From NCBI RefSeq assembly GCF_001194135.2, contig NC_068995.1, positions 28,754,680 to 28,798,911 on the forward strand: a stretch of DNA of 44,232 bases, read 5' to 3'. This document shows positions 940 through 37,188 of the stretch, piece after piece. This stretch comes from Octopus bimaculoides (taxonomy: Eukaryota). The notes beneath the pieces are model-generated. The model was not told the DNA's origin. It was given only the letters and a program-made list of their open reading frames with translations, and ran no database searches. Each line of letters begins with the position of its first letter. Within the stretch, counting starts at the first letter, position 1. The position numbers and the translations under genes are program-made.

Positions 940-1078
940 ATTTCTTTATTACCTACAGGGGGCTAAACATAGAGGAGACAAACAAGGACAGACAAGGGGA
1001 TTAAGTTGATTACATTGACCCCAGTGATTAACTGGTACTTATTTAATCGACCCCGAAAGGATGAAAGGCAAAGTCGAC
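940..1078 (-). mobile_element. SINE 3' fragment (core ...GTCGACTTTGCCTTTCATCCTTTCGGGGTCGATTAAATAAGTACCAG..., Meta-domain-like)
   Basis: The reverse complement of ~1020-1078 gives the core motif, followed by CACTGGGGTC and a T-rich tail. The head of the same family is seen at 39775-39868. Confidence 0.7.
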
Positions 1079-1344
1079 AAGTACACTAATGTTGAAATTA
1101 CTATTAAGATATTTTGGGATGGTCATTTTCTTTTTCTTTTTTGCCAAATAAACACCTGCACTATATATTTTTTCTCTGCTCGTTTATTACTGTTTTTATT
1201 TTATTATTCATATTCATTGTCCGGAAATCTTTCGTCACACATCAGTGATCTCTTCAGCGACACTTCATTGACACACCAAAACGAAAATAATTTAATATGA
1301 GAGACGAACTTATAAAGTTTTGAACATAAATGCTCAGTACTTAA

Positions 1345-2536
1345 TATGCAAAGAGGGGAGAAAGCAGCCTGCAGAGGATTGCGGTTACGACCATGGGTGA
1401 ACCCGACGGTAGTGGGTATAGATATTTAGGGATTTTGGAGGTAGATGACATTCTACACAGAGAAGTGAAAGTCAAGGTCAGCGAGATGTAGCAAAAAAGG
1501 TGAAGATGGTGTTGAAATCCAACCTGAATGCCAAAAATTTGGTTACCGCAATGAATATCTGAGCCGTTGCGGTGGTCAGATATAGTGCGTCCATTCTCAA
1601 ATGGACTAAGAAGGAAATATCAACACCGAATAGAAGGACGAGAAAGTTGATGACGCTGCATGGCGCGCAACACCCTAAAGCAAACGTAAACAGACTGTAT
1701 ATGAAAAGATAAAAATGGTGGCAGAGGACTAATTAGTATAGACCATTGTATAAGGAGTGAAAGGAGAACGCTTGCCGAGTATTTGATAAATAATGATGAA
1801 GACCCGCTGCAATATACCGTGTAAGATATGGATGTAAATGAAGATGAAATGATGGGCAAGGAAGAGTTTAGCCAAAGAGCTGAGAAGAAGAGAAATGAAG
1901 ACCTTGAAATGAGAATGCATGGAGAATGTGAAAGGAATACACAGGGCGTTAAGGACAATACAGCATCGTGGGCATGGCTTGAGCGGGGGGATTTGAAGCG
2001 TAGTACCGAAAGCCTGATCATTGCTGGACAAGACCAGGCTCTCGCTACCAATTCAGTGAAGTATAACATCCATAAAACTTCTGACCCCCAGAAATGCAGA
2101 CTCTGTGGAAAGAGTTTGAAAAATGTGACCCACTTGGTAAGTGGATGTGAGAGCCTGGCACAAAAAGAATACAAGTGCCGCCACGACAAAGTGTGTGTGT
2201 ATCTTCATTGGCTCTTATGTCGTAAATACCAATATGAAGTAACAGAGAACTGGTATGAGCATGTACCAAGTAAAGTTATGCAGGAGGATGGAAAAGTAAC
2301 GATACTCTGGGACTATGATTTTCAGACGGATCATGTAATCGAACACCGTTGGCCGGATATTGTCATATTGAATAAGAGAAACAAATACTGTCAGATCATT
2401 GATGTAGCCATACCAAATGACATGAATGTTGTGAGGAAAGAGGTTGAAAAACCACCAAGTACACCAAATTGAAAGTGGAAATGATAAGACTGTATGGAAT
2501 GCGAGAGGGTAATGTAAAAGTGATACCAGTGGTGAT
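1345..2536 (+). mobile_element. 5'-truncated R4/Dong-like non-LTR retrotransposon (RT C-terminus, CCHC zinc finger, restriction-like endonuclease), decayed
   Basis: Frames read YRYLGILE...KMVLKSNLNAKNL...YSASILKWT...NRLYMKR..GGRGL, then ORF 1828-2472: AGQDQAL...CRLCGKSLKNVTHLVSGC...RHDKV...LWD...RWPDIVI...IIDVAIPND...KEVEK. After a frameshift it continues KYTKLKVEMIRLYG...VIPVV, which fits the PD-(D/E)xK RLE of R4-clade elements. It runs into the N-gap at 2537. Confidence 0.85.
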
Positions 2537-4260: not shown

Positions 4261-5099
4261 AAAATAACGAACACAAAAAAAAAAAAATACTCAAGGGCTC
4301 TTCTAACGAAGCTCTCCTTCTCTCTTTCCGTTTCCTCTAAACTCAAATACACACAGACTATCACCCAGATTTCACAGATACTGATACTCTGCATCAAGAA
4401 ATAAAAATGAAGGGGAACCCCAAGAATCAAAAGGAAACTAATAGTAAAAGAATAAAACATCATGCCTCATACCAACGTACACACCAAACAACAGAAAACA
4501 CACCCACAACAACCACAAACACACCTACAGTAAAACCAACATTTCTTGCACCACAGTCATCATCACATCTACCGCCACCACAACTCTTCCTCAACGGCAA
4601 CAATCCGTAAAAGACAACACATTGCATTGCAACAATCAACAATATAAACACAAAACTGTGTTAGTGAGGAAAGACATAGCACGAAGGAAGGGCATCAGAT
4701 AGAGGGTGATGTCACTGATTTTGGTGCGTGTGCGACTAGAAGCATATAAAAACATTAAGGAGAGCTTCTTCGTAACGTTGAAGTAAAAGTAATTTTTGGT
4801 ATAAATCAATACATAAAGAGTTATTAGTAATTAAAGTTTGAAAATTTTGGTAATTTTAGTCAATCGTAAGCCACGGACACATTCATGTTTTTCTCTTTTG
4901 AATTAACATAAAAATTTATTTACATGCAAGAAAATTACCGGAGACATTGTTTACAAATATTGACATGTGCTAGACGGAGAAGTTGCTGTCTGCCAGTAGA
5001 GAGGAAAATAGTAAGGAATGCACGGTGCTCACTAGAAAGAAAGAAAAGATAAAGGTGGGTCTGCTCTGATTGGCTGTAAGCAAATGAGTTCATTACTGG

Positions 5100-6112
5100 G
5101 GTCCGGAACTGACGTGGGAAAAAATTTCGCCTCCAGATAGGGTTAGAATGGGAGGCGGAGTTGCAGTGCTGCTTAGGAAAGGCCTGGTACGGAAGATCTT
5201 CCTGGACCCGGATGGTAAGTTTGTGGTCCTGGATGTGAGCAGTAGCGAAAATAGTGCTTTTATATTAGTCGCTGTGTACGCCCCGATAGGGGTGGGGAAC
5301 AGACGTTTGAAGGTTTTCTATTGGACGTCTTGCTCTTTAGTGCTAGTGAGCGATTGGAACGCCATATCGGACACACACCTGGATAGGATGCGGTAAACCA
5401 ATAGAAGACAGGGTGTAGGTGTAAAAGCCTCACAAACCTGCTCATTGCTTCCAACTGGCTAACTGGATTTCCCGAATGCGCCAGTATGAACAGGGTCATC
5501 AGCTCATCCATATCATATCTTGATAGAAGTAGCATTAGTTGTCCACAATTCAAAGACTTCAGCTGCACAGAGCACAAATTTGTGATCTGTACAGTCAATA
5601 AAGATACGATCCATAGGCAGGGTCCCAGTTACTGGAAGTTGAACGCATCTTTCCCGGCACCTGAAGCTTTCAGACACCGGCCTAGCAAGTTAGTCTATCG
5701 GAAGCTGTCGGGTGAAACTGTCAACAACCGATGGTGGATAGCCTTGAAACGTGAGTAGAAGCGTAATGGTTAAGAAAGAGGAATCTATAGTAGAAGGACT
5801 CTCAGTAGGACAAACTTGAAGAGGCATAGCGATCGACGTGCTGACGGCGAAATTTCCTCTTGATCAGCCCTTCAAAGACAAGCACGAAAGTTGCGTTGTC
5901 AGAGTTAGGGCACGTGTTCTAAGACATGAGATGGCTGAAAGTCATCCGACAAGCTTGGGTAGCTGAGGGGCAACGTAGCAACAACGCCACAATTTTGGTC
6001 CTTGACGGACCGAAAAGGGCACACGCTACTTGAATCCAAGACCAGTCGGAGGTAACGAATGCATACAACACTTCCGTCATCTACTACTGCCTGACTGTCG
6101 TCCCTTGTCCTG
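5100..6112 (+). mobile_element. Tx1/L1-clade ORF2 fragment (APE endonuclease and linker), decayed
   Basis: ORF 5148-5396 reads GGGVAVLL...DPDGKFVVLDV...LVAVYAP...SDWNA (GDFN-like). ORF 5486-5758 reads YLDR...TEHKFV...GPSYWKLNAS. These are APE motifs typical of Tx1/L1 ORF2. Confidence 0.8.
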
Positions 6113-6969: not shown

Positions 6970-8240
6970 AGGTAATTTCCATTAAGAGGACAGGACAATG
7001 CAGATAGCAAGTATGGACTTATACATAGAAGAAATTCTTCAGTAATTAAGGACTTAGAAACTTTCAAACTAATAAAGATAAAATTGCTCAAAGTGAACAA
7101 CAGTTTCCAAAGTTCTCTTAAAGGAGCTGTTAACTTTGTATGAAAGCTACTTTGAGGATCCTACCCACCCCACAACCCCGACTCAAAATGTAGGTCTATA
7201 AACTTGATTAAAAACAAAATAATTTTAACTATTGAAAATATTTTAGATTCTATTTTGCGAATGTTATAGATTTTCCCTTACTCAATTTAATATCGTGAAG
7301 ATTTACTCGTGAATAGAAAGATATTTTCTACTAAAAGGTACTTGGACAATGACTTCATCCTACATGTCAAGGAATCATTACTGCTTTTAAATGTTATACA
7401 TGTGTCAAGAAAAAACGATGTTACTTTCTTCGATATGGTTATATGTGCGAATGGTGAAGTAGAATAATAAATGCATATAGGAACATATATTCTTCATTGT
7501 TTAGATACAGAATTTTCATATTTGTAAGCAGATGTATACTGGAATAATAACCTTATTATTACATACAACATGAATAGACATGAACTCGATAAACTTAGGA
7601 AAGACTTTATTGCTGTCTTCTAGTTCATGGGTCTGCAGACACGAATCTTAGTACTGTTAACTTCGTAGATATCATCTTAGGTCTGCAATCCAACAGTTTC
7701 AGGCCTTATCGTAAGCCTAATAAAATGTTATTCTTCATTAATATGGGTTGTAGTTATCCGCCCTGTATATGTACGAATTTAGTTTGTTACATAAATAAGC
7801 CAATCGTCTTGACATCAGATGAAGCGACTTTTAACAATGTATTTTCATGCTACTTAGGAATAACAGATTATCCAAGCAGATTTACTATTTTGCGAGACAT
7901 CACAGAACTAAAACTAGAAAGATTTTGCGGTTTAAACCTGTTTCGTGTGAATGTCAGGAACAACGGCGAAAGAATTTATATCTAAGTATTTTACCAGGGA
8001 CCGTAAATATTAGAACTTTTAACGGAATCTCGAAGCCTAGCAATTATTGCTGCAAAGACTTCGCCTTGTAAGTAGTGGCGACAAATCTAATGCATATAAT
8101 GACAACCTTAAGTGCAATCCAAAGACCTCAGTAACTGCTCTCTGAATGTTAATTTTCTGATCAAAGAAGTTAACAGGGCCGAAGAAATTTACACTGGCGT
8201 CACAGAAAACAGTTTCAAAACGCGATCGGTCTTTACCTTT
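6970..8240 (+). mobile_element. Penelope-like element (Naiad-type) RT/thumb to start of GIY-YIG, heavily decayed
   Basis: Fragments include FNIVKIYS (FDIxxFYPS-like), FFDMVIC..GEVE..IGTYILHCL (FDVxMGSxDGAExCELVGxYIL-like), FRPYRKPN..FIN..SYPP, SDEATFNN and EIYTGVTENSFKTR. Confidence 0.65.
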
Positions 8241-8741: not shown

Positions 8742-9131
8742 GCTGTGTGGTAAGAATCTTGCTTTCCAACAACATGATTTCGAGTTCAGTTCCACTGCGT
8801 GGCACCTTGGGCAAGTGCTTTTTACTATAGCCTGGGGCCGACCAAAGCCTTGTGGGGGGGGGGGGGGATTTGGTAAACGGAAACAGAAGGGAACCCGTCA
8901 AATATATATGTGTATATATATCTATGTGTGTGAGTCTTTGAGTCTGTGTTTGTGCTCCCACCTCAGCTTGACAACCGGTTTTGGTTATATTTGCGTCTCT
9001 GTAATATAGCGGTTCGGCAAAAGGGATTAATAGAGTAAGTACCAGGCTTAAAAATAAATACTAAAAAAATTCAAGGCAGTACCACAGCATGGCCGCAGTC
9101 TAATGCCTGAAACAAGTAAAAGATATAAAAG
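8741..9131 (+). mobile_element. Near full-length tRNA-headed SINE (octopus-type)
   Basis: Head GGCTGTGTGGTAAGAATCTTGC...GAGTTCAGTTCCACTGCGTGGCACCTTGGGCAAG, internal TA/TG tract, core TAGCGGTTCGGCAAAAG...AAGTACCAGGC, tail CTGAAACAAGTAAAAGA. Other copies of the family are spread through the window. Confidence 0.85.
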
Positions 9132-10755: not shown

Positions 10756-10937
10756 AGCGCAGGTAAGAGGTTGTGTGGTAAGGAGCTTACTTCTCAACCA
10801 CTTGGTTCCGGGTTTAGTCCCACTGCGTGGCACCTATAATCTTCTACTATAGCTTCGGGCAGACCAAAACTTTGTGAGTGGATTTAGTTGACGGAAACTG
10901 AAAGAAACCTGTTGTATATATATATATATATATATAT
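10756..10937 (+). mobile_element. tRNA-headed SINE, 5' half (runs into gap)
   Basis: TGTGTGGTAAGGAGCTTACTTCTCAACCACTTGGTTCCGGGTTTAGTCCCACTGCGTGGCACC...GACGGAAACTGAAAGAAACC then (TA)n. Confidence 0.85.
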
Positions 10938-22229: not shown

Positions 22230-23420
22230 GATAATGCGGTAATATGGGGATTAGTTAAGAATATTTCTACAAAAATTTCCAGATTATCCGGTAATAAAGG
22301 AAAAAAAAACCTTATAATACTGCTTTAGATAGGGCTGGATACCGTGAGAAAATTCATCAATTCTTCCAATAATAATACACATTGTACACCATCACAACAT
22401 TACGGTATGCGAACTGACTCAGATCGAGAATAAAGGCCAGGAAGAATTCGTCATGGCAATAAACTACTAACCAAAAACGCATAAACACACACACGATGCA
22501 ATAATTCTATTGCTCATAATACAGTAAATTGTTCCAATTCAATACAACACACTAGATCAAATAAGCCAAGTAACAAATATAAGAATCATGATGTCCTCTG
22601 GTACAACTCAATCTTCAGTTCACGTTTCAACAAAGATCACTGGGAAATTCTTTGCCGCTTTAGACAGATGTTTCCCTATACCAAATAGATACCATGCTAT
22701 TTTAATCGACACACCGTGAATGTATTTTACGCTAACTCTATTAATTTAGAGCAGCATATGCACCGCATAAGCAATAGTAAAATGAAACAACAGTTTAATA
22801 ACCCACCTACTGGACCCAGCAAACATAGGCATCAAAATACCAACAAAGGAGATGTAAACTGCAATGAAAAGCACCAATTAAAGCCAAATCGTGATGGTAG
22901 AAATGCTTGCGATATAGCTAACACGGTAACAACGTCGGAAAATGAAGTCAGAACTGCCATATATACAAATAGATATTATATATGCTCATGCAGAGAAAAA
23001 TCAAAATACCCATTGATGAATCTCTGCATGAATACAAATCTTGTATATAAATGTACCGTGCACACAAGGGAAAAGATGTATGTTTACATTGGGCAAACGG
23101 CTGATTCATTCAAAAATCGTTATCGCAACGATGTCGCCAGCTTCAGAAAGATCAATAAGAAACAGTCAACATCTTTGGCCCATTTTGTGTGGCGACTTAA
23201 GGAAGATCAAATTAAGTGTAACACAACTTGGTCCATATTGAGGCACGCAAAACCATATGATATCATTTCCAGGAGTACCGACTCTGCTCCGCGGAATCCC
23301 CTATCTATTCTGTGGACCAATGAAAAGTTCCTTAATAGAATTTCTGAAAGACTTTCAAGATGCCTACATGCATCTAAGTGTACTTTCGCACGATGGAGTA
23401 GGAATGAATTTGAGTAGCTG
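22230..23420 (+). mobile_element. Penelope-like element (Naiad-type) 3' portion, including open GIY-YIG frame 22716-23417
   Basis: LWYNS...LDRCFP...FNRHTVNVFY; CSCREKSKYPLMNLC; VYKCTV...YVYIGQTADSFKNRY..D..SF...TSLAHFVWRLK...TWSIL..AKPY...CLH. Confidence 0.85.
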
Positions 23421-27317: not shown

Positions 27318-29661
27318 CACTGGGCAACGAAAACAGATTTATTGTCTGCTACCCAGATAAATAGTGCTGTACTAAACTAAATCGAGTACGCTGATTCCGA
27401 ATCTGAACTCAGAATTGCATATTATACATACATACATACATACATATATATATACATACATACATACAATTTTGAGTTATGCGCATAATTATATGATAAT
27501 ACTATATCAGAATCAGAATAGTTAAGTTCAAGATAAATAATTATTATAATCATACATTAGTACTGTATGCAGTGAATTTATGTTCAAGGCAAACAGTATT
27601 ATAATATAATGGTACATAGTATATTTATGCTATGGGAATACTCACTTTATTTTTGATTGCACTTATGCATCGAGTTGGTCTTCCGTTGTAGGAACCAGCA
27701 GTAGTCACACATCCTGTGTGGATGGAACCGGCCTTGATACGTCGTTTCCATCTCAGATATGTCCTGGTGGAACCTCTTACCATGTTCATCACGAAGGGCA
27801 CCAAGATTCGTTGGAAAAAACATCGAGATGAGAATGCAAGAAGTGCATTTTAAGGGACATTCTTCTATACGTTGTTAGCATGTTGTTTATTAAATCAGCA
27901 TAGTTTTCAACTCTATGATTTCCCAGAAAGTACTGTACAACTAACACGAATGAATCCCATTGCCGTCAGCTCAACTGGATTCAGTTTACCTCTGAATTTA
28001 CTATCAGATATCAATTCTCTGATCTCGGGTCCAATGAAAATGCCTTCTTTCAGTTTTGCGTCACTTTTCTCTGCACCACATTTTACTTTTAGGTACTGGA
28101 AGCCACGACCATCGTGTGTCATTGCTTTTACAAAGTTTTTCATGAGGCCGAGTTTGATGCGAAGGGGTGGAATGAAAATCTTTTACGGGTTTAGCAGTGG
28201 TACATGCTGCACATTGTACCGACCAACTATGCGCTCATCTCTTTTAGGCCAGTCTTTTACAGTGTAATGATTGCTGACGTCGCGGCTACTTCCAACACAC
28301 AAGAAGCACATATTTTTGGTATATCCAAGCTGCAGTCCCAGGAGGAGGGAAATCACCTTTAAATCACCACAAATATTCCACTTGTGAACTGAATAATTAA
28401 CACCTTTCAGAAAGAGTTCCATCGATTCATAAGTTTCTTTCATACCGACAAAATGACTCACAGGAATGGAAGGCTTTTCATGACTATTATGTGACAACAC
28501 AGCTTTGAGGCTAACTTTTCTCGAGTCTATAAACAATTTCCATTCGTTAGCCACATGCACGTGTCCTAGTTTTTGCATGCGGACATTAACATCAGTACAG
28601 AAACAAGCATTATTTTCTTGCTTGTAAAAGACAGATAAGCCTTCATGGCGAGAACGGAAGATGGAAACTTTTGTACCTTGCTGTAGGAGATTCCGTTGCT
28701 GTAGTCTGGATCCTAAAACTTCTGTTTTCTGCTTTGACAATGTCAGATCTCTTACTAAATCGTTCAAATGTTCTTCATTAAACAATTGTGGCTCATTTTT
28801 CTTAGAATCATCTACGTACTCTTCGTCGTTAGGAGAGTCAGGGGGTTCATCGTGCGACATGTAAAGATTTCCAAGTGAAGCATGTGAGAGGGGAACTGAG
28901 ACAGGGTTCTTGAAGTCATGTTTTAGAGCCGATTTACAATCTGCATACACAAATATTGCTTTGGTTTTCTTTGAGAAACTGCTAATATTAGTCATGTAAA
29001 AGTAACATGATTGGTTGGCTCACGCCATACTATTGGTACAGCAAAATGCATTCCCTTCCGTTATCCATTCAGCCATTGTGTAAGCCCTGAGTAACGCACG
29101 GTGCAGCACATATGAGGTGCCCACCTCTTGTCTTGGTCCCAACTTTACATCCGAAATATTATTTTTAGGCAATTTTTAATTTGGTAGCAATGTTCCTCCG
29201 CTGGTCACGCGGAGCAAGTTTCCACAGACATAACAAACGTTGTCTGGGTGATTCACACAGCCTCTCTTATTCATGATCTAGCATAATGGACAGAGTTAAA
29301 ACAGTAATCACGCAGAACGAGAGATACACATACCACACGTGATGGCAGCGCAAACGACACTGATAGTTACCAAGAACATAATATGTCAGCGCCATCTATT
29401 GCTAAACTAAATGATGAACTTTCTTATTATTTGTTTTATTGCTGTTATTTCTTTAATTTTGAATTAAGACCGCTTTCATTTTATCAAATTTTATAATACG
29501 GCCTATATCTAGCCGAAAGTATAGTTATAATCTTGCGCATACGCATAACTCCAAATCCTGACGTGCTAGAACAATTTTGAGTACAGATTCGGAATCAGCA
29601 TCCTCGATTTAGTCTAAAACACCTGCTTTTACCCCAGTAGCAAAACTTTTGTTGTCCAGTG
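27318..29661 (-). mobile_element. Full-length Chapaev3 (CMC) DNA transposon, 2344 bp, TTA target-site duplication
   Basis: Termini are CACTGGGCAAC (27318) and GTTGTCCAGTG (29661). Subterminal inverted blocks read CTAAATCGAG.A.GCTGATTCCGAATCTG.ACTCA.AATTG. TTA lies at 27315-27317 and 29662-29664. The internal transposase carries Chapaev3 motifs. Confidence 0.9.
27647..29274 (-). pseudogene. Chapaev3 transposase, frameshifted
   Basis: N-terminus MNKRGCVNHPDNVCYVCG...GDQDKRWAPHMCC...VPIVWREPTNH. ORF 28183-28995 has WKLFIDS..SLKAVL.HN...ICGDLKVI..LLGLQLGYTK.MCFLC. Then MKNFVKAM..KLKEGIF.GP, and a C-terminus LKMHFLHSHLD...DEHG.RFHQDI..ME..YQG...MCDYCW. Confidence 0.9.
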
Positions 29662-29985: not shown

Positions 29986-30750
29986 CGCAGCAGATATCAA
30001 ACGCAGTAGATATTAAAAAAAAAAAGAACCTAATTACAAAATAAGAAAAGGAAAAACATGTGAATTACTAAACCAATTTGTAAAGGCCTCGCTGAGAAAA
30101 TTTGAAGGAAACAAGAGATGCATTCTCAAAGAGAAAACATCCACATATCTCTCATTCGTCCCAGTTTCAACCCTCCAGAACACAGTTTCCACTCCCCTTT
30201 GATCTGGTTTCAACTCTAAAAATTACTGTCACACACACACACTCACTGTATATGTATGTATATGTACATGTATATGTATGCATATGTACATGTATATACA
30301 TATAAACATATGTATATTTCTATATGTAGCTTATTTTTTTATTCTTTATTCTTTTACTCGTTTACTTGCTTCACTCATTTGACTGCGGCCATGCTGGAGC
30401 ATTGCCTTAAAGGGTTTTAGTCGAAGGAATAGATCCCAGGTCTTATTCTTTTTAAGCCTGGTACTTATTCTAGCGTAATCTTTTGCCGAACCGCTAAGTT
30501 ATGGGGACGTAAACACATCAACACTGGTTGTGAAGCGCAGCGGGGTGGGGTGGGGTGGGGATACAAACACAGACATAAAGACATACACATATAAATATAC
30601 ACATAAATATACGACGAGCTTCTTTTAGTTTCCGTCTACGAAATCCACTCACAAGCCTTGTTGCCCCGAAGCTATAGTAGAAGACACCTGCCCCAGGTAC
30701 CACGTAGCAAGATTGAACACGAGGCAATATGACTGGGAAGCAAGCTTCTT

Positions 30751-31054
30751 TATTTCTTTCTTTTAAATTGCCATAAAGGCATTACACCGAGGGAGACACT
30801 ACAACACATGTGTGGACATATAACAATTAAAAATATGAAAATAAAATATGATATTATGAATGGCTTCAGCAAAACTTATTGTCTTCAATACTCCTTCCAT
30901 CTTTATGACCACCCTCCTCCGACCAGCTCCGACGACGACGACGACGACGACGACAACTCAGACCCGTCAAGTTCTGAGTACATCTTCTAAGCAACACAAA
31001 GAACTACGTCCAACTCTTACAAAATCCAGACAGTAAATAACCCGACGCATGCGC
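30751..31054 (-). mobile_element. 304-bp internally deleted Tx1-like mini-element (B2): 5' UTR, ORF1 start and 3' tail
   Basis: 30870-31054 is highly similar to 32330-32494, and 30751-30860 is highly similar to 31070-31175. It is bounded by 15-bp TSDs at 30736-30750 and 31055-31069. Confidence 0.9.
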
Positions 31055-31069
31055 GGAAGCAAGCTTCTT

Positions 31070-32494
31070 TATTTCTTTTAAATTGCTATAAAGGCATTAC
31101 ACAGAGGGGGACACTATAACACATGTGGGGACGTATAACAATTAAAAATATAAAAATAAAATATGATATAATGAGTGACACATGAAATGAACATGAAAAA
31201 CGAATTAAAATATGATAGCATGAATGATATCTGAAAATGATATTATGAAGAGTGTGCTACTCATCCCACACTGAGTAACCCCACTCGCTGCCTCTAAGGC
31301 CTAAGTCCTTTTTCTCCTTCAGTCCAATCCTTTTCTCCCTCTCTCCATCACTTAGTGACATCATTCTCTCCGCCATGCATTCAATACCTTTTTCACCGGG
31401 GGTGGGGGGGCGTCTTCTAAATTTTGTGGTGTTTGTTCTTTCTTGTGGGGTGGGTGGGTTTAGTGTCTGTATGGGGAGGGTGGGTCTGAGTGGTCTTGGG
31501 TGGGATGGAGTTGGACTGGGGTACCACATCATACTCAGAGTTTTTCTTTTTCTCTCTTTCTCCGTCTGCTCTCTAACTTTCCATTCTTCCTCCTTTTCCT
31601 CCTTTCCTCCGTCTGTCTTTTCTTCCTCTCTTTTCTCTTCCGTCTCCACAACTGTTTCTTCAGTCATTGTCTTCTGTAGAGGGCAGTATGCTCTAATGTA
31701 ACTCTTTTGGCCACATTTAAAACAACGTGGTACTCTGCTCTTTACCCACACCCTCGGCACAATTTCCCCTAACGTCACCGTCTCTGCCAAGTTCTCCAGT
31801 TGATCCTCCTCCCTCTGAATAATGAGTACAAGTGTCCTTCCTTTCAAGCCTCCTTCTTCCGTTTCTGTGGCTTGGAGGACAGCCACCTTCTCGCTTCCAA
31901 CAAGGACAGCTGCCGCTACCCAAGCCACTTCTATATCCGGTGGAATTGCTTCTACCCTCACCTTGGAAGTCTTTCTTCTCAGGTATGTGGGCAGAAGTAC
32001 TACTTCATCTGTTTTCACCACCACACTCGCCAGCCTCCTCGCCTCCTCTACTGTCCTAAATTGGACGACCATTGTCCTACATCTTCTTCCTTTGGTTATG
32101 TACGTTATCTCCTTTGTTCATTCCCTCAGCGTCTTTTCCATTTCTGCCTCCACCTGTTCTGCCTTTTTACCTTTCAACGAGTACACCTTATAGGTGATCG
32201 TTTTCTTCTCCACCCTCTCCATAATTCCTTTGGGGAGCAACAACTTCACATCGCCACCCACCTTCTGAGCCATCTTCTCGTACTCCTTCATACCAGTCAA
32301 GTTCAGCTCCCTTCGCTTCATCTCCTTCGCCTCAGCAAAACTCCTTGTCTTCAATACTCCGTCTATCTTTATGACCGCCCTTACCAGCTCCTCCTCCTCC
32401 GACGACAACTCAAGGTCTGAGTACATCTAAGCAATACAAAAAACTACGTCCGACTCTAACAAAATCCAGACAGGAAATAACCCGACGCATGCGC
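31070..32494 (-). mobile_element. 1425-bp ORF1-only Tx1-like non-autonomous retroelement (B1)
   Basis: It has a 5' UTR starting GCGCATGCGTCGGG, a single ORF1, and a ~190-bp T-rich 3' UTR ending AAAGAAATAAA. There is no ORF2. TSDs are at 31055-31069 and 32495-32509. Confidence 0.85.
31257..32426 (-). pseudogene. Tx1/L1-type ORF1 protein (389 codons, one in-frame TGA): RRM-like domain plus CCHC knuckle
   Basis: ORFs 32118-32426 and 31257-32072 are in the same frame, separated by TGA at 32118-32120 (LRE*TKEITY; W in the paralogue LRPIWDDIVY). Motifs include VVQFRTVEEARR, VRVEAIPPDI and CFKCGQKSYIRAYC (H replaced by Y). Confidence 0.8.
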
Positions 32495-32529
32495 GGAAGC
32501 GAGCTTCTTACCACAATGTCACGCTTATG

Positions 32530-32560
<31 letters not shown>

Positions 32561-33786: not shown

Positions 33787-34485
33787 AGTCTTTGGTGTGG
33801 CAATGTTACAGAGGAGCCCTACCCGTTCGGGATAAGCTCACCAGACACAGCCACCCTAGGCCGTCGGCCTGTCCAAGATGCGAGCGGGACGTAGAAACTA
33901 TTGTTCAGTGTCCGGGTGTATCAGAAGTGTGGACTTATGCAGAACACCTGTTGTCAGATGGAAGAAAAGTACAGCTATCACCTGAAGCAATTCTAAATAT
34001 TAACCCACCAGATTTCCTTACGGAAGAAGGTAAGAATTGTTTTCTCGTAGTAGTAACAATTGTGAGAGAGGTGATATGAAAGTCAAGGATGAAAGGTATT
34101 GTGGCAGACAGCTTCGTCTCCGGCCTCGCTTTGGTGAATGTTTTCACTTTTCACCTGAAAAAGAAGGTGGGGCTGGAAAGGAAGTGTCTGTTAGTATGTT
34201 CAAAAGATGGACGTGTGTAGCACGTATGTTGGGAGTGAAATGCCCTGCGTGAGCACGTCATAGAGATTACCAAAGGTGTCGGTAGAGAAGACAGGGCTCG
34301 TGGGGTTGGAGCATGCCTGTCTTTTAAACCCCATATTGTCTTTCATTGTATGTAATTGTCTTTTATATCCCATTCGATTTTTCATTTTGTCATTTTAAAT
34401 TTTTATTACCATTTGATTGTAAATGACCCTAGATCATATTGTATTGTCCTCTCTATGTGCACCTGTAATAGGTAATACAGAAAAA
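33787..34485 (+). mobile_element. 5'-truncated Tx1/L1-clade element (D): ORF2 C-terminal zinc-finger region, 3' UTR and A-tail
   Basis: ORF 33792-34079 reads WQCYRGALPVRDKL.RH...CPRCERDVETI..C (zf-RVT-like). The T-rich 3' UTR ends TTGTCCTCTCTATGTGCACCTGTAATAGGTAATACAGAAAAA. Confidence 0.8.
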
Positions 34486-34498
34486 GCAACGAAACGTT

Positions 34499-36179
34499 CG
34501 CTTCGAACCTACTGTGCTATTTTGTCTAATGCGTTTGTGAAATATTGAGTGTTGTGTGCTGCTTTGCAGCAGTTTGGGTGTTTGCGTGTGTTTGTTTGTG
34601 CTTTCTCTTCTCGTAAGAGGAGGGATAGCTTGGTAAAGGATGTCTGAAGAAAATTATAGTTTCTCGGACATATCATCGTCCGAGGAGGAGTTGCTGGAGG
34701 CGGTCCAGAAAATGGATCATAAACTGAGAACGAAGAAAAGAAATTTTGCTGATGCAGCAATGTGTAAGGAGACTGAATTGAATATTGAGGAGAAAGGAAA
34801 ACACAGAAGTGAAATGAAACGAGATAGGATCGAAGTAAAGCTGTCAACCCCGCAAGAAGTAAGAAACAGGATTAAGGAAAAACAATAAACTATCAAACCT
34901 TTTCGATAAGTAAAAGAAAGATTGATGTCGTCACGACGGAACAAGTGGAAAAGGTGCTAAGGCCGATTTGGGATGACATAGTGTACCTGGCGAGAGGTTC
35001 AACGTTCGGCATAGTGGAAGTAAGATTTCGGAATGCAGCAGCAGCAAGAAAACAGGCAGCGACTACAATACAGAGTGAAGAAGTGGTGTTTTTGCCCACG
35101 TATAGAGGTATCAGAACAACGAGAATTACTGTCGAAGGAATCCCACCAGAAATAGATGTGGCTTGGGTGGCAGATGCTATCCTCTTTGGATATGAGGACA
35201 ACATAGTGGTGCTCCAGGCCGCGAAAAGGGATTGCGTAAACTGGAGAGGACAATCACTGAATATGATAGTACAGGGATCGAATGAAACGTTGGAAAGGAT
35301 CACGAAAACGATAACTATGGAAGAAACAGTAATGACAGTCAGGGTGGAAGGAAGAGTTCCACACCGCTTTAATTGTGGCCTGACGGGCCACATTAGCGCA
35401 GACTGCACGATAAGATCAAGAAAACCGGAGGGAAAAACATCCAGATAATATGGAGGAGGATAAAGAAGAGCGCCGCGGAAAGGAAGAAACCAAAAAAGAA
35501 GAGGAAGTTGCGAAAACAGAGGAAAAATGGGGAAAAAGCTACAGGAAGAAAAAGGAAAAAGGCAAGTGAACTAAACTGTAAACCCCATTCCATACCCATC
35601 CCACCCACTCCCTCTCAGACCCACCCTCTCTCTGCAGACACCAAGCCTACCCGTTCCCATCCGACACAAAACAAAAGACAAACACACACAAAGAAGCTCA
35701 AAACCCCTCCCCCAAGGAAAAAAAGGAGGAAAAAGTGCAGAGCGTACATGTCATTTAGTGATGAACTGTTGAATGAAACGTCGACATGGGATGATCTGAA
35801 GTTTGTTGGAACTGCTGAGTTTGATAATATTGAGGAGTATTACATGTGTGTGGTGCCTAATAAGAAGCAGGAGGGGAGAATACTTGCGTTTAAGGTCGGA
35901 TATAGTTCTTGGGAGGTGGACTGCAGCTGGAATTCACTCCCAGGTTTTACAACTTATGATAAGTGGTTAGAGGAGACAGGAATTAATCTTTTAGAAGGTA
36001 GAAAAGGTAGAAAATGAGGCTACTTGTAAGTGGGGCGAGTGGTTCCATTTCCATTTTTCATAATCATGTTTTTATGCATTATATCATACATTTTTGTTTT
36101 ATTTTCAATGTTTTATGTCCCACGTGTTTTACTGCATTGTCCCCTCTGTGTGTCCTGGTATGGGAAATAAAAAAAAAGC
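34499..36179 (+). mobile_element. ~1.68-kb ORF1-only Tx1-like non-autonomous retroelement (C)
   Basis: It has a 5' UTR of ~140 bp, ORF1 pieces spanning 34640-36017, and a ~160-bp 3' UTR ending TTGTCCCCTCTGTGTGTCCTGGTATGGGAAATAAAAAAAAA. CAACGAAACGTT flanks it at 34487-34498 and 36180-36191. Confidence 0.8.
34640..36017 (+). pseudogene. Tx1/L1-type ORF1 (RRM plus CCHC plus C-terminal extension), two frameshifts
   Basis: ORFs 34640-34888, 34945-35448 and 35508-36017 lie in three different frames. They are colinear with the B1 ORF1: SSSEEELLEAVQKMD, VEVRFRNAAAARK, FLPTYRG, ITVEGIPPEIDVAWVA, RFNCGLTGHISADC. Confidence 0.8.
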
Positions 36180-37188
36180 CAACGAAACGTTTGGTGAGGA
36201 AATGACCAGTGAGTGGTCAGCTCGAAAATGGTTTAAACGATTTTACAGTGGAGATCTGAGCCTTGAAGATCGTAAGCGTAGTGGACAGCCACCTGTCATC
36301 GATGACGGTCAATTAAAGACCGTCACTGAGAAAGATCTACGTAAAACCATTCGAAAACTGGCAAACGAACTTCAAATTAGCCAGAAAACTACCTGCAACC
36401 ATTCGCATGCGATCGGAAATACAAAACAGCTCGACAAATGGGTACCACACGATTTGAATGAAAATCACAAAATGCGCAGATATGACATTTGCTCGTTGCT
36501 TCTTCTCCGTAACCAGACCGATCCATTTCTCAACTGTATTGTAAGTTGCGATGAAAAGTGAATTCTGTACAATAATAAAAAGAGAAACGTTCTTCGCAAT
36601 GGTTGGACCAAAATGCAGCACCGAAAACCTTCCATAAATCCGAGTTCTTCAAAAAGAAGGTTATGGTGGCTGTTTGATGGTGTACTGCTGGACTCATCTA
36701 CTATAGCTTCTTAAAACCCGGAAAAACCATTACTGCAGAAATATGTTGTTATGAAATTGCCAAAATGAAAGAAAAACTGTTACTCCTCCAACCCAGACTG
36801 GTCAACAGAAGAAGGTCAATCATTCTTCATGACTATGCTCGACCACACGTTTCACTAATGACGCTCCAGAAGTTGAGGAAACTTGGCTACGAAGTTCTTC
36901 CTCCCCGGCCCAAGCTTATTCCCCAGATCTTTCTCCTACCGACTACCACTTTTTCAAGCACTTTGATGGTTTCCAGCGATAGAAGGAGTTCAAAAACCAA
37001 ACTGATGTTGAAAGTGCGTTCAAAGAGTTCATCAGTTCCAGAACTCCAGATTTTTATGTTACTGGAATAAACAAACTTGTAACTCGTTGGCAAAAATGTG
37101 TTGATTGTAATGGTACTTATTTTGATGAATAAAATTTCCGCATTGTTGAAATATATTGTGATGGATTTCATATTTCAAAACTTTTATT
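36180..37188 (+). mobile_element. Mariner (Hsmar1/cecropia-like) transposase fragment lacking its N-terminus; stop at 37130-37132
   Basis: NETFG...RKWFKRF..GDLSLED..RSGQP...KWVPHDL...CDEK*ILY...HDYARPH...PDLSPTDYHFFKH...RWQKCVDCNGTYFDE*. These are the WVPHEL, D,D34D and YSPDL-type motifs. The 3' TIR probably lies in the gap. Confidence 0.9.

Follow-up and report, generated by a model that had tools for sequence, protein, structure and literature searches.

Two tandem LINE-derived elements nested at one site in the head of an octopus SINE

Structure of the locus

The locus analyzed here lies in a 44,232-nt stretch of Octopus bimaculoides DNA (assembly GCF_001194135.2, NC_068995.1, positions 28,754,680 to 28,798,911), hereafter the window, in which a short interspersed element (SINE), a copy of the family termed SINE#1, is split by two related elements, B1 and B2, derived from a long interspersed element (LINE). 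The coordinates of all features are displayed in Table 1. The 15-mer GGAAGCRAGCTTCTT has three matches in the window, all on the plus strand, corresponding to the copies a, b, and c in Table 1, and its chance expectation in 100 dinucleotide shuffles of the window is 0.00. Allowing up to three mismatches adds, among SINE-related sequence, only the diverged heads at 8752 and 10780. Along the minus strand the order is SINE 5' end - AAGAAGCTCGCTTCC - B1 - AAGAAGCTTGCTTCC - B2 - AAGAAGCTTGCTTCC - SINE remainder, and the homology between B1 and B2 runs at both ends precisely up to the 15-mers. Deletion of B1, B2, and two of the 15-mers leaves a sequence that aligns without gaps to two intact SINE heads (8740 and 10769). 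The locus is a real, cleanly resolved nested insertion. A preliminary description of this stretch had reported the 15-mer at three positions bracketing two related elements arranged head to tail, and our results agree well: the same three coordinates were recovered, both elements are on the minus strand, and their shared ends are approximately 90% identical. The restored SINE head that it proposed was likewise reproduced by the gapless alignment, except that the second intact head starts at ~10769 rather than at 10756.

Host SINE and origin of the 15-mers

Several copies of SINE#1 are present in the window, and the family also occurs in O. vulgaris. Intact copies contain an A-box-like motif, TGGCTGTGTGG, detected by motif scan, and a B-box-like motif, GGGTTCAGTCC, read from the sequence. 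The insertion is located directly after the former and ~35 nt before the latter, so that the motifs flank it, as expected from the earlier placement of the insertion between the A and B boxes; in the host copy they are now 1.76 kb apart. No tRNA was recognized in four SINE heads by the Rfam model, run permissively at E<=10, or by ARAGORN, and an Rfam gathering scan together with ARAGORN returned no RNA genes in the window. Because neither program calls a tRNA, the tRNA origin of the SINE#1 head rests on the box-like motifs and on the literature of octopus SINEs, for which a passage of PMC4758252 cites Ohshima and Okada 1994. It should be added that the window, a draft scaffold, contains 3510 N, spread over many blocks beside microsatellites and SINE tails; several SINE copies are interrupted by these gaps, and their heads are hidden.

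The origin of the 15-mers can be judged from the same family. All three read AAGAAGCT(T/C)GCTTCC, while SINE#1 copies of O. vulgaris read AAGTAGCTTGCT(A/T)ACC at this position and other copies in the window read AAGAATCTTGCTTTCC and AAGGAGCTTACTTCTC. Since all three 15-mers carry variants private to the host copy, they are genuine target-site duplications (TSDs) made at the locus, as had been proposed, rather than element termini.

Nature of B1 and B2

B1 consists of a 68-nt 5' untranslated region (UTR), a first open reading frame (ORF1), and a 3' region of ~300 nt. It has no ORF2, and no similarity to a reverse transcriptase or an endonuclease was found anywhere in 31070-32494. ORF1 contains one in-frame TGA at 32118-32120 and likely a frameshift near its 3' end, on account of which this copy is considered dead. 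Its zinc-knuckle remnant has the form CX2CX4YX4C, in which the His of the CCHC pattern is changed to Tyr; relatives carry CFKCGQKGHIRAHC, and in two of them (P0005 and P0026) Pfam zf-CCHC is above threshold. The B1 ORF1 is 72% and 43% identical to O. bimaculoides gene models, 42% identical (E=2e-68) to the intact 384-aa ORF1 of E1, an element of O. sinensis, and 42% identical (E=2e-37) to the ORF1 of a full-length LINE of O. vulgaris. A search of 1.84 billion representative proteins with an ORF1 profile gave 585 matches. In the AlphaFold model of ORF1, a beta-alpha-beta-beta-alpha-beta unit upstream of the knuckle was predicted with a predicted local distance difference test (pLDDT) score of 55-74, the mean of the model being 45.7. 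Foldseek with this model returned only generic alpha/beta, ferredoxin-like folds and was set aside as evidence; a sequence search of the PDB with ORF1 gave nothing meaningful.

B1 thus retains ORF1 and a LINE 3' tail in the absence of ORF2, the combination that defines a half-LINE. By homology, B1 is assigned as an ORF1-only half-LINE of an octopus L1-group lineage, because its ORF1 is homologous to that of a full-length LINE whose ORF2 is colinear with that of L1. The retroelement identity put forward earlier is borne out by this homology and by that of the tail described below. B2 comprises the 5' ~180-190 nt and the 3' ~105-110 nt of a B element, with 89.8% identity to B1 in shared columns, and accordingly reads as a related copy lacking the internal region. 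The divergence of the two copies is 10.9%, with transitions and transversions roughly equal, and the tail repeat of B2, AAAGAAAGAAATA, is 4 nt longer than that of B1 through one extra GAAA unit. A DNA transposon or an element with long terminal repeats (LTRs) was rejected as the identity of B1 and B2, which have no terminal inverted or long terminal repeats and combine an A-rich 3' end with a LINE ORF1.

Exact-protein look-ups with the B1 ORFs and the closest B-like proteins (P0001-P0004 and P0042) found nothing on record. Queries from B (ORF1, 5' end, and tail) and from the SINE core also found nothing in metagenome, prokaryotic, and viral collections, which apparently hold no octopus DNA. 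Two annotated genes are probably gene-model chimeras across adjacent repeats: P0001 (UniRef A0A0L8GU38) joins a B-like ORF1 to C2H2 zinc fingers, and P0028 joins an ORF1-like stretch to Helitron/PIF1 helicase domains.

Full-length relative and shared 3' tail

The full-length LINE of O. vulgaris (L001) encodes an ORF2 of 1132 aa with Exo_endo_phos, RVT_1, and zf-RVT domains, which is colinear with the human L1 ORF2 protein (ORF2p) over residues 3-868 (E=2e-71). No database match to L001 bore a clade name. In the repeat annotation of O. vulgaris, 13 recently active families are listed as "L1-Tx1", the only L1-group category there (PMC13282606). The lineage of B1 and B2 probably corresponds to this category, a placement at the level of the L1 group, the reverse transcriptase being absent from B.

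Members of the lineage share the layout of their last 50-65 nt, in which GTCCCC..CTCTGTGT is followed by a 3-bp stem with a 5-nt loop and then by a AATAAAGAAAT-like end. Besides B1 and B2, the tail profile matches two elements of a sister family in the window (C0 and C1), the full-length LINE of O. vulgaris, SINE#2 (a second abundant octopus SINE), and further copies. The score of the C1 tail against the B1 and C0 tails was reached in 0 of 1000 shuffles. Pairing of the 3-bp hairpin is kept in 88.9% of cells, and two of its three pairs show compensatory changes; folding of the last ~100 nt of four tails detected no large stable structure (z-scores from -0.8 to +0.7). SINE#2 terminates in the tail motif as well (..TTGTCTCCTCTATGTTTAGCCCCCTGTAGGTAATAAAGAAATA), which suggests that the LINE lineage is its mobilizing partner. 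The conservation of the tail fits a model in which the ORF1-only elements, and SINE#2 with them, would be mobilized in trans by tail-recognizing ORF2p of autonomous members.

Sister array C in the window

A second array, containing C0 and C1, is located on the plus strand of the same window. C0 is 74% identical to the O. vulgaris full-length LINE over 419 nt; its ORF2 C-terminus gave no protein matches. Directly after C0 comes a CAACGAAACGTT, and an identical one comes after C1, the same TSD-sandwiched arrangement as in TSD-B1-TSD-B2-TSD. C0 and C1 are at most 71% alike over 48 nt of tail and cannot be aligned elsewhere, and for this reason they are not recent local duplicates. For duplicates made in situ, identical 12-mers would be improbable at the divergence between C0 and C1, roughly 0.65^12 = 0.006. 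The array sits in the N-terminal helix-turn-helix region of a mariner transposase gene (36192-~37200), the upstream half of which is missing.

Copies of the lineage at other loci

Further copies were found in three octopus species and in a cephalopod read set. The O. vulgaris LINE forms a tandem array in which ~55 nt ending in ..AACGAAACGT, resembling the 12-mer of the C family, occur at every junction between units and also ahead of the first unit. On extension of this locus the target was not found: the left flank is unassigned sequence, and the right end lies in an assembly gap. The O. sinensis element E1 is inserted in a SINE#2 head and lies among a cluster of several SINE#2 copies. Moreover, one O. 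bimaculoides locus (L003) holds three copies of the lineage within 3 kb.

Three of the seven independent loci are in SINE heads, and such heads make up ~2.1% of the 86 kb of octopus DNA sampled (P=3e-4, or ~7e-3 as a binomial estimate without the discovery locus; both tests are small and post hoc). A tandem or same-site arrangement was observed at 4 of 8 lineage loci. Repeated insertion into SINE heads, as claimed in the preliminary description, is therefore supported for the lineage to the extent that insertion at the same site or in tandem recurs (the C array, L001/L004, and L006) and that heads are the target at these three loci, while B itself was seen at one locus.

Three long ORFs elsewhere in the window had no Pfam match at E<=0.01: 1828-2472 (+), 22716-23417 (+), and 28183-28995 (-). 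By eye, the first resembles the C-terminal region of another LINE ORF2, and the second shows a YVYIGQT..F..R..H motif reminiscent of GIY-YIG (Penelope-like) endonucleases.

Table 1. Features of the B1/B2 locus, of the sister array, and of related loci. Coordinates are those of the window unless a locus is named.
Location	Strand	Feature	Basis or remark
32510..32535	-	Host SINE#1 5' end, upstream of insertion	Alignment with intact heads 8740, 10769
32511-32521	-	A-box-like motif TGACATTGTGG in host SINE#1	Motif scan
32495..32509	-	TSD copy a, AAGAAGCTCGCTTCC on element strand, 5' of B1	One T>C relative to copies b and c
31070..32494	-	B1, ORF1-only, 1425 bp	Sequence, ORF1 homology
31257..32426	-	B1 ORF1 frame, 389 codons	Six-frame translation, comparison with P0002
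31683..31724	-	B1 zinc-knuckle remnant CFKCGQKSYIRAYC	Comparison with relatives
31070..31135	-	B1 3' tail: GTCCCC..CTCTGTGT, mini hairpin GCC-TTTAT-(A/G)GC, A-rich end ..AAAAGAAATA	Tail profile
31055..31069	-	TSD copy b, AAGAAGCTTGCTTCC, between B1 and B2	15-mer search
30751..31054	-	B2, 304 bp, without internal region	Comparison with B1
30736..30750	-	TSD copy c, AAGAAGCTTGCTTCC, continuous with SINE remainder	15-mer search, head alignment
30400..30735	-	Rest of host SINE#1	BLAST to other SINE#1 copies in window, head alignment
30710-30720	-	Degenerate B-box-like motif GTGTTCAATCT in host SINE#1	Alignment
33789..34486	+	C0, 5'-truncated 3' end of autonomous sister-family LINE, ORF2 C-terminus and lineage tail	zf-RVT, Pfam PF13966, E=4.7e-5
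34487-34498	+	First CAACGAAACGTT 12-mer, after C0	Sequence search
34499..36179	+	C1, ORF1-only element of sister family	Tail homology
36180-36191	+	Second CAACGAAACGTT, after C1, running into mariner transposase gene	Sequence search
941-1080	-	SINE#2 copy	Tail motif
L004 4445-19184 (= L001; O. vulgaris, GCA_951406725.2, OX597840.1)		Tandem array of at least 3 full-length 5.28-kb LINE units	Units 99-100% identical
L006 1500-1716 (Logan SRR11869391, cephalopod)		Tail-to-head junction	Tail ..AAATAAAGAAA, ~17 nt, then 5' UTR and ORF1 start of another lineage element
L005 ~4454-6056 (O. sinensis, GCA_006345805.1, CM016880.1)	+	E1, ORF1-only, intact 384-aa ORF1	TSD CAGAAAYGTTAGCACGCCG; inside SINE#2 head
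L005 1000-1165	+	SINE#2 copy	Tail motif
L003 4526-4601 (O. bimaculoides, GCA_001194135.2, CM046605.1)	-	76-nt tail-only copy	TSD GGTATTTAACCYAGC; in SINE#2 head
L003 ~4783-5671	+	D1, without internal region	TSD ACACAACMCAGTT; apparently in 5' UTR of another LINE
L003 ~7165-7315	-	~150-nt copy	TSD CAGTCCTCGATGCATA; in unassigned sequence

Re-insertion and its alternatives

Judged from sequence, the B1/B2 array probably arose by two sequential insertions of a target-specific, non-autonomous element of the L1/Tx1 group into one SINE-head site. Several observations weigh against this reading. B is known from one locus, as two copies at the same site of one SINE copy, and no autonomous partner of B was found. 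In PMC4494074, a LINE is regarded as target-specific when >20% of its copies have the same flanking sequence; the present evidence is one well-formed locus with supporting relatives, not a demonstrated family property. The clade placement of the lineage reaches the L1 group and does not separate Tx1 from L1. Elsewhere, copies were located in a LINE-like 5' UTR, in unassigned sequence, and, as regards the tail-sharing SINE#2, in AT-rich ordinary DNA; with copies also outside SINE heads, the lineage has more than one kind of target. The O. vulgaris array, with units 99-100% identical, could be a segmental duplication. Finally, the 15-mers differ at 1 position, where ~3.3 differences would be expected from the divergence between B1 and B2 (Poisson P ~0.16). 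This count is compatible with that divergence, and the B array taken alone is consequently ambiguous between re-insertion and duplication.

The duplication would have begun with the chance landing of a non-specific LINE in a SINE, an unremarkable event in octopus genomes, in which SINEs make up >11% (PMC13282606). Tandem duplication between the 15-bp TSDs, through unequal recombination or slippage, would then have followed, with the loss of 1.1 kb from one copy and the decay of both. Unequal exchange between flanking direct repeats yields exactly the observed order TSD-element-TSD-element-TSD. However, 15 bp is very short for homologous exchange, and B1 and B2 are ~10% different, with transitions about equal to transversions and unequal numbers of tail repeats. 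Moreover, the duplication leaves unexplained the sister C array in the same window, and it has to be set against the tandem and same-site arrangements and the over-representation of SINE heads as targets described above. Re-insertion is favored on the strength of these three observations made outside the B array, and local duplication is regarded as its main, though unlikely, rival.

Another explanation retains repeated insertion and changes what guides it. The lineage might be directed to the heads of SINEs of the Pol III (RNA polymerase III) type, or to cognate tRNA genes, by chromatin, bound factors, or structure and not through endonuclease recognition of a family-specific sequence; re-use of the B site would then reflect the regenerated TSD and pairing of the tail with AAGAAG. 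The three insertions in heads do occupy two unrelated SINEs at three positions (the 15-mer of SINE#1, and CAGAAAYGTTAGCACGCCG and GGTATTTAACCYAGC of SINE#2), and the implied nicks, CTT/A, ACC/T, and TGT/A, have no consensus. These differences would also be seen if the families had separate sequence targets, one each, as do published Tx1 families, and the sample consists of 7 loci. Furthermore, the targets of other families of the lineage, a mariner ORF and a LINE-like 5' UTR, lack a Pol III promoter, and B re-used one exact nucleotide position. Guidance of this kind is rather improbable.

Two remaining possibilities can be dealt with briefly. That the 15-mer belongs to the element termini, an alternative raised in the preliminary description, or was carried from a donor locus by read-through, leaving the array uninformative about the target, is very improbable: the ~55 nt at every unit junction of the O. 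vulgaris array and before its first unit could be carried 5' sequence of this sort, but at the B locus the SINE head is incomplete without one 15-mer, all copies show the private variants of the host SINE rather than the SINE consensus, and the homology between B1 and B2 ends exactly where the 15-mers begin. A single insertion with template switching was rejected, as a complete TSD-length copy lies between B1 and B2.

Proposed mechanism and its implications

Under sequential insertion, the B elements would be copied by target-primed reverse transcription with endonuclease and reverse transcriptase activities supplied by an autonomous relative, whose enzyme would recognize the shared 3' tail, namely the mini hairpin and ..AAAGAAATA. 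The bottom strand of the SINE head would be nicked at 5'-GCTTCTT/ACCAC-3'. The nick is placed here because the sense strand of the element is the minus strand of the window and the cDNA would be primed from the plus-strand 3' end ...GGAAGCAAGCTTCTT; the position implied in the preliminary description is the same, as follows from the orientation of the element and the position of the TSD. The A-rich end of the RNA, ..AAAGAAAUA, would pair with TTCTT before reverse transcription, and a second, staggered nick 15 bp away would give the 15-bp TSD. The target is nearly palindromic (GAAGC-TT-GCTTC). Since each TSD copy contains the whole 15-mer, the target site is regenerated and a second insertion becomes possible. 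A second member of the family would later have entered one TSD copy to give SINE5'-TSD-B1-TSD-B2-TSD-SINE3'. We infer from these features family-wide sequence specificity, mobilization in trans, the order of insertion, and inactivation of the SINE Pol III promoter; with its box-like motifs parted, the host SINE copy would have lost Pol III promoter function, and SINEs may serve as a "safe harbor" target.

In a broader and distinctly tentative reading, an L1/Tx1-group lineage of cephalopods may have split into families that home to defined sites in the Pol III heads of SINEs or in other transposons, and may supply the tail of SINE#2 and so probably mobilize it. If so, the LINE would both propagate a SINE and split SINE promoters, a built-in conflict with its own parasites, and would in addition give rise to "half" elements, ORF1-only, propagating at those sites. 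Should B be confirmed genome-wide, SINE heads would join the repeats targeted by sequence-specific LINEs, and the Tx1-style "transposon inside transposon" strategy would have an example in a mollusc. Such targeting could help explain LINE activity with little gene damage in an octopus genome so rich in SINEs, each insertion parting the A box from the B box in a single SINE copy. Site-specific modules of LINE endonuclease and reverse transcriptase are also of practical interest as programmable insertion tools.

Comparison with known systems

Many LINEs of the Tx1 clade are target-specific, with targets in small nuclear RNA (snRNA) genes, in microsatellites, and in other transposons, among them a piggyBac-type transposon in Xenopus and, in crocodilians, a mariner family, LTR elements, and Harbinger (PMC4494074). 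In particular, Tx1 inserts in the piggyBac-type Tx1D of Xenopus and the Tx1-Mar families in Mariner-N4_AMi of crocodilians (Kojima 2015, PMC4494074), and a passage of the same paper quotes Keno as a Tx1-clade family specific for U2 snRNA genes. Tandem insertions that sandwich a TSD have also been described (PMC4494074), so that the novelty considered in the preliminary description does not extend to transposon-targeting Tx1 families or to such tandems. The octopus elements resemble these LINEs in belonging to an APE-type lineage with an L1-like ORF2, in occupying one position per family in another repeat, and in having TSDs of ~12-19 bp, TSD-sandwiched tandems, and short non-autonomous partners on the same target; like Tx1-Mar, the sister family C is inserted in a mariner. 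They differ in their target, the Pol III-type head of a SINE, and in their cephalopod host, and the specificity of B is deduced from one locus. A literature search found no LINE that targets SINE heads, Repbase and Dfam lying outside its scope.

In other systems the target is connected with small RNA genes. Dewa, Keno, and Mutsu, of the Tx1 clade, insert within small multicopy RNA genes and split them; according to work attributed to Kojima and Fujiwara in 2004, these families are reportedly specific for tRNA arrays, U2 snRNA genes, and 5S rRNA genes, respectively. The tRNA-like head of a SINE could extend this kind of target. Unlike the situation in these families, the occupied copies here are SINE heads, in which neither Rfam nor ARAGORN recognizes a tRNA, and no insertion in a tRNA gene is among the loci seen. 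The non-LTR elements TRE5 and TRE3 of Dictyostelium and Ty3 of yeast, which are Pol III-directed integrators, insert at fixed distances outside tRNA genes through TFIIIB/TFIIIC. The octopus insertions are similarly associated with Pol III templates that bear A and B boxes, but they occupy defined sequences inside the heads, and the targets of sister families have no connection with Pol III.

HAL1 ("half-L1") elements of mammals are ORF1-only derivatives of L1. The three octopus families represented by B1, C1, and E1 are comparable, being ORF1-only, retaining the LINE 3' end, and requiring ORF2p in trans. They are distinguished from HAL1 by an ORF1 with an RRM-like region (in a low-confidence model) and a CCHC knuckle rather than an L1 type II ORF1, and by insertion at the same site and in tandem. 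HAL1 is listed under L1 (PMC5753468). Taken together, the locus is most likely a further case of Tx1-type, target-specific, TSD-sandwiched insertion, which differs from the known cases in its SINE-head target, its cephalopod host, and its combination with ORF1-only derivatives.

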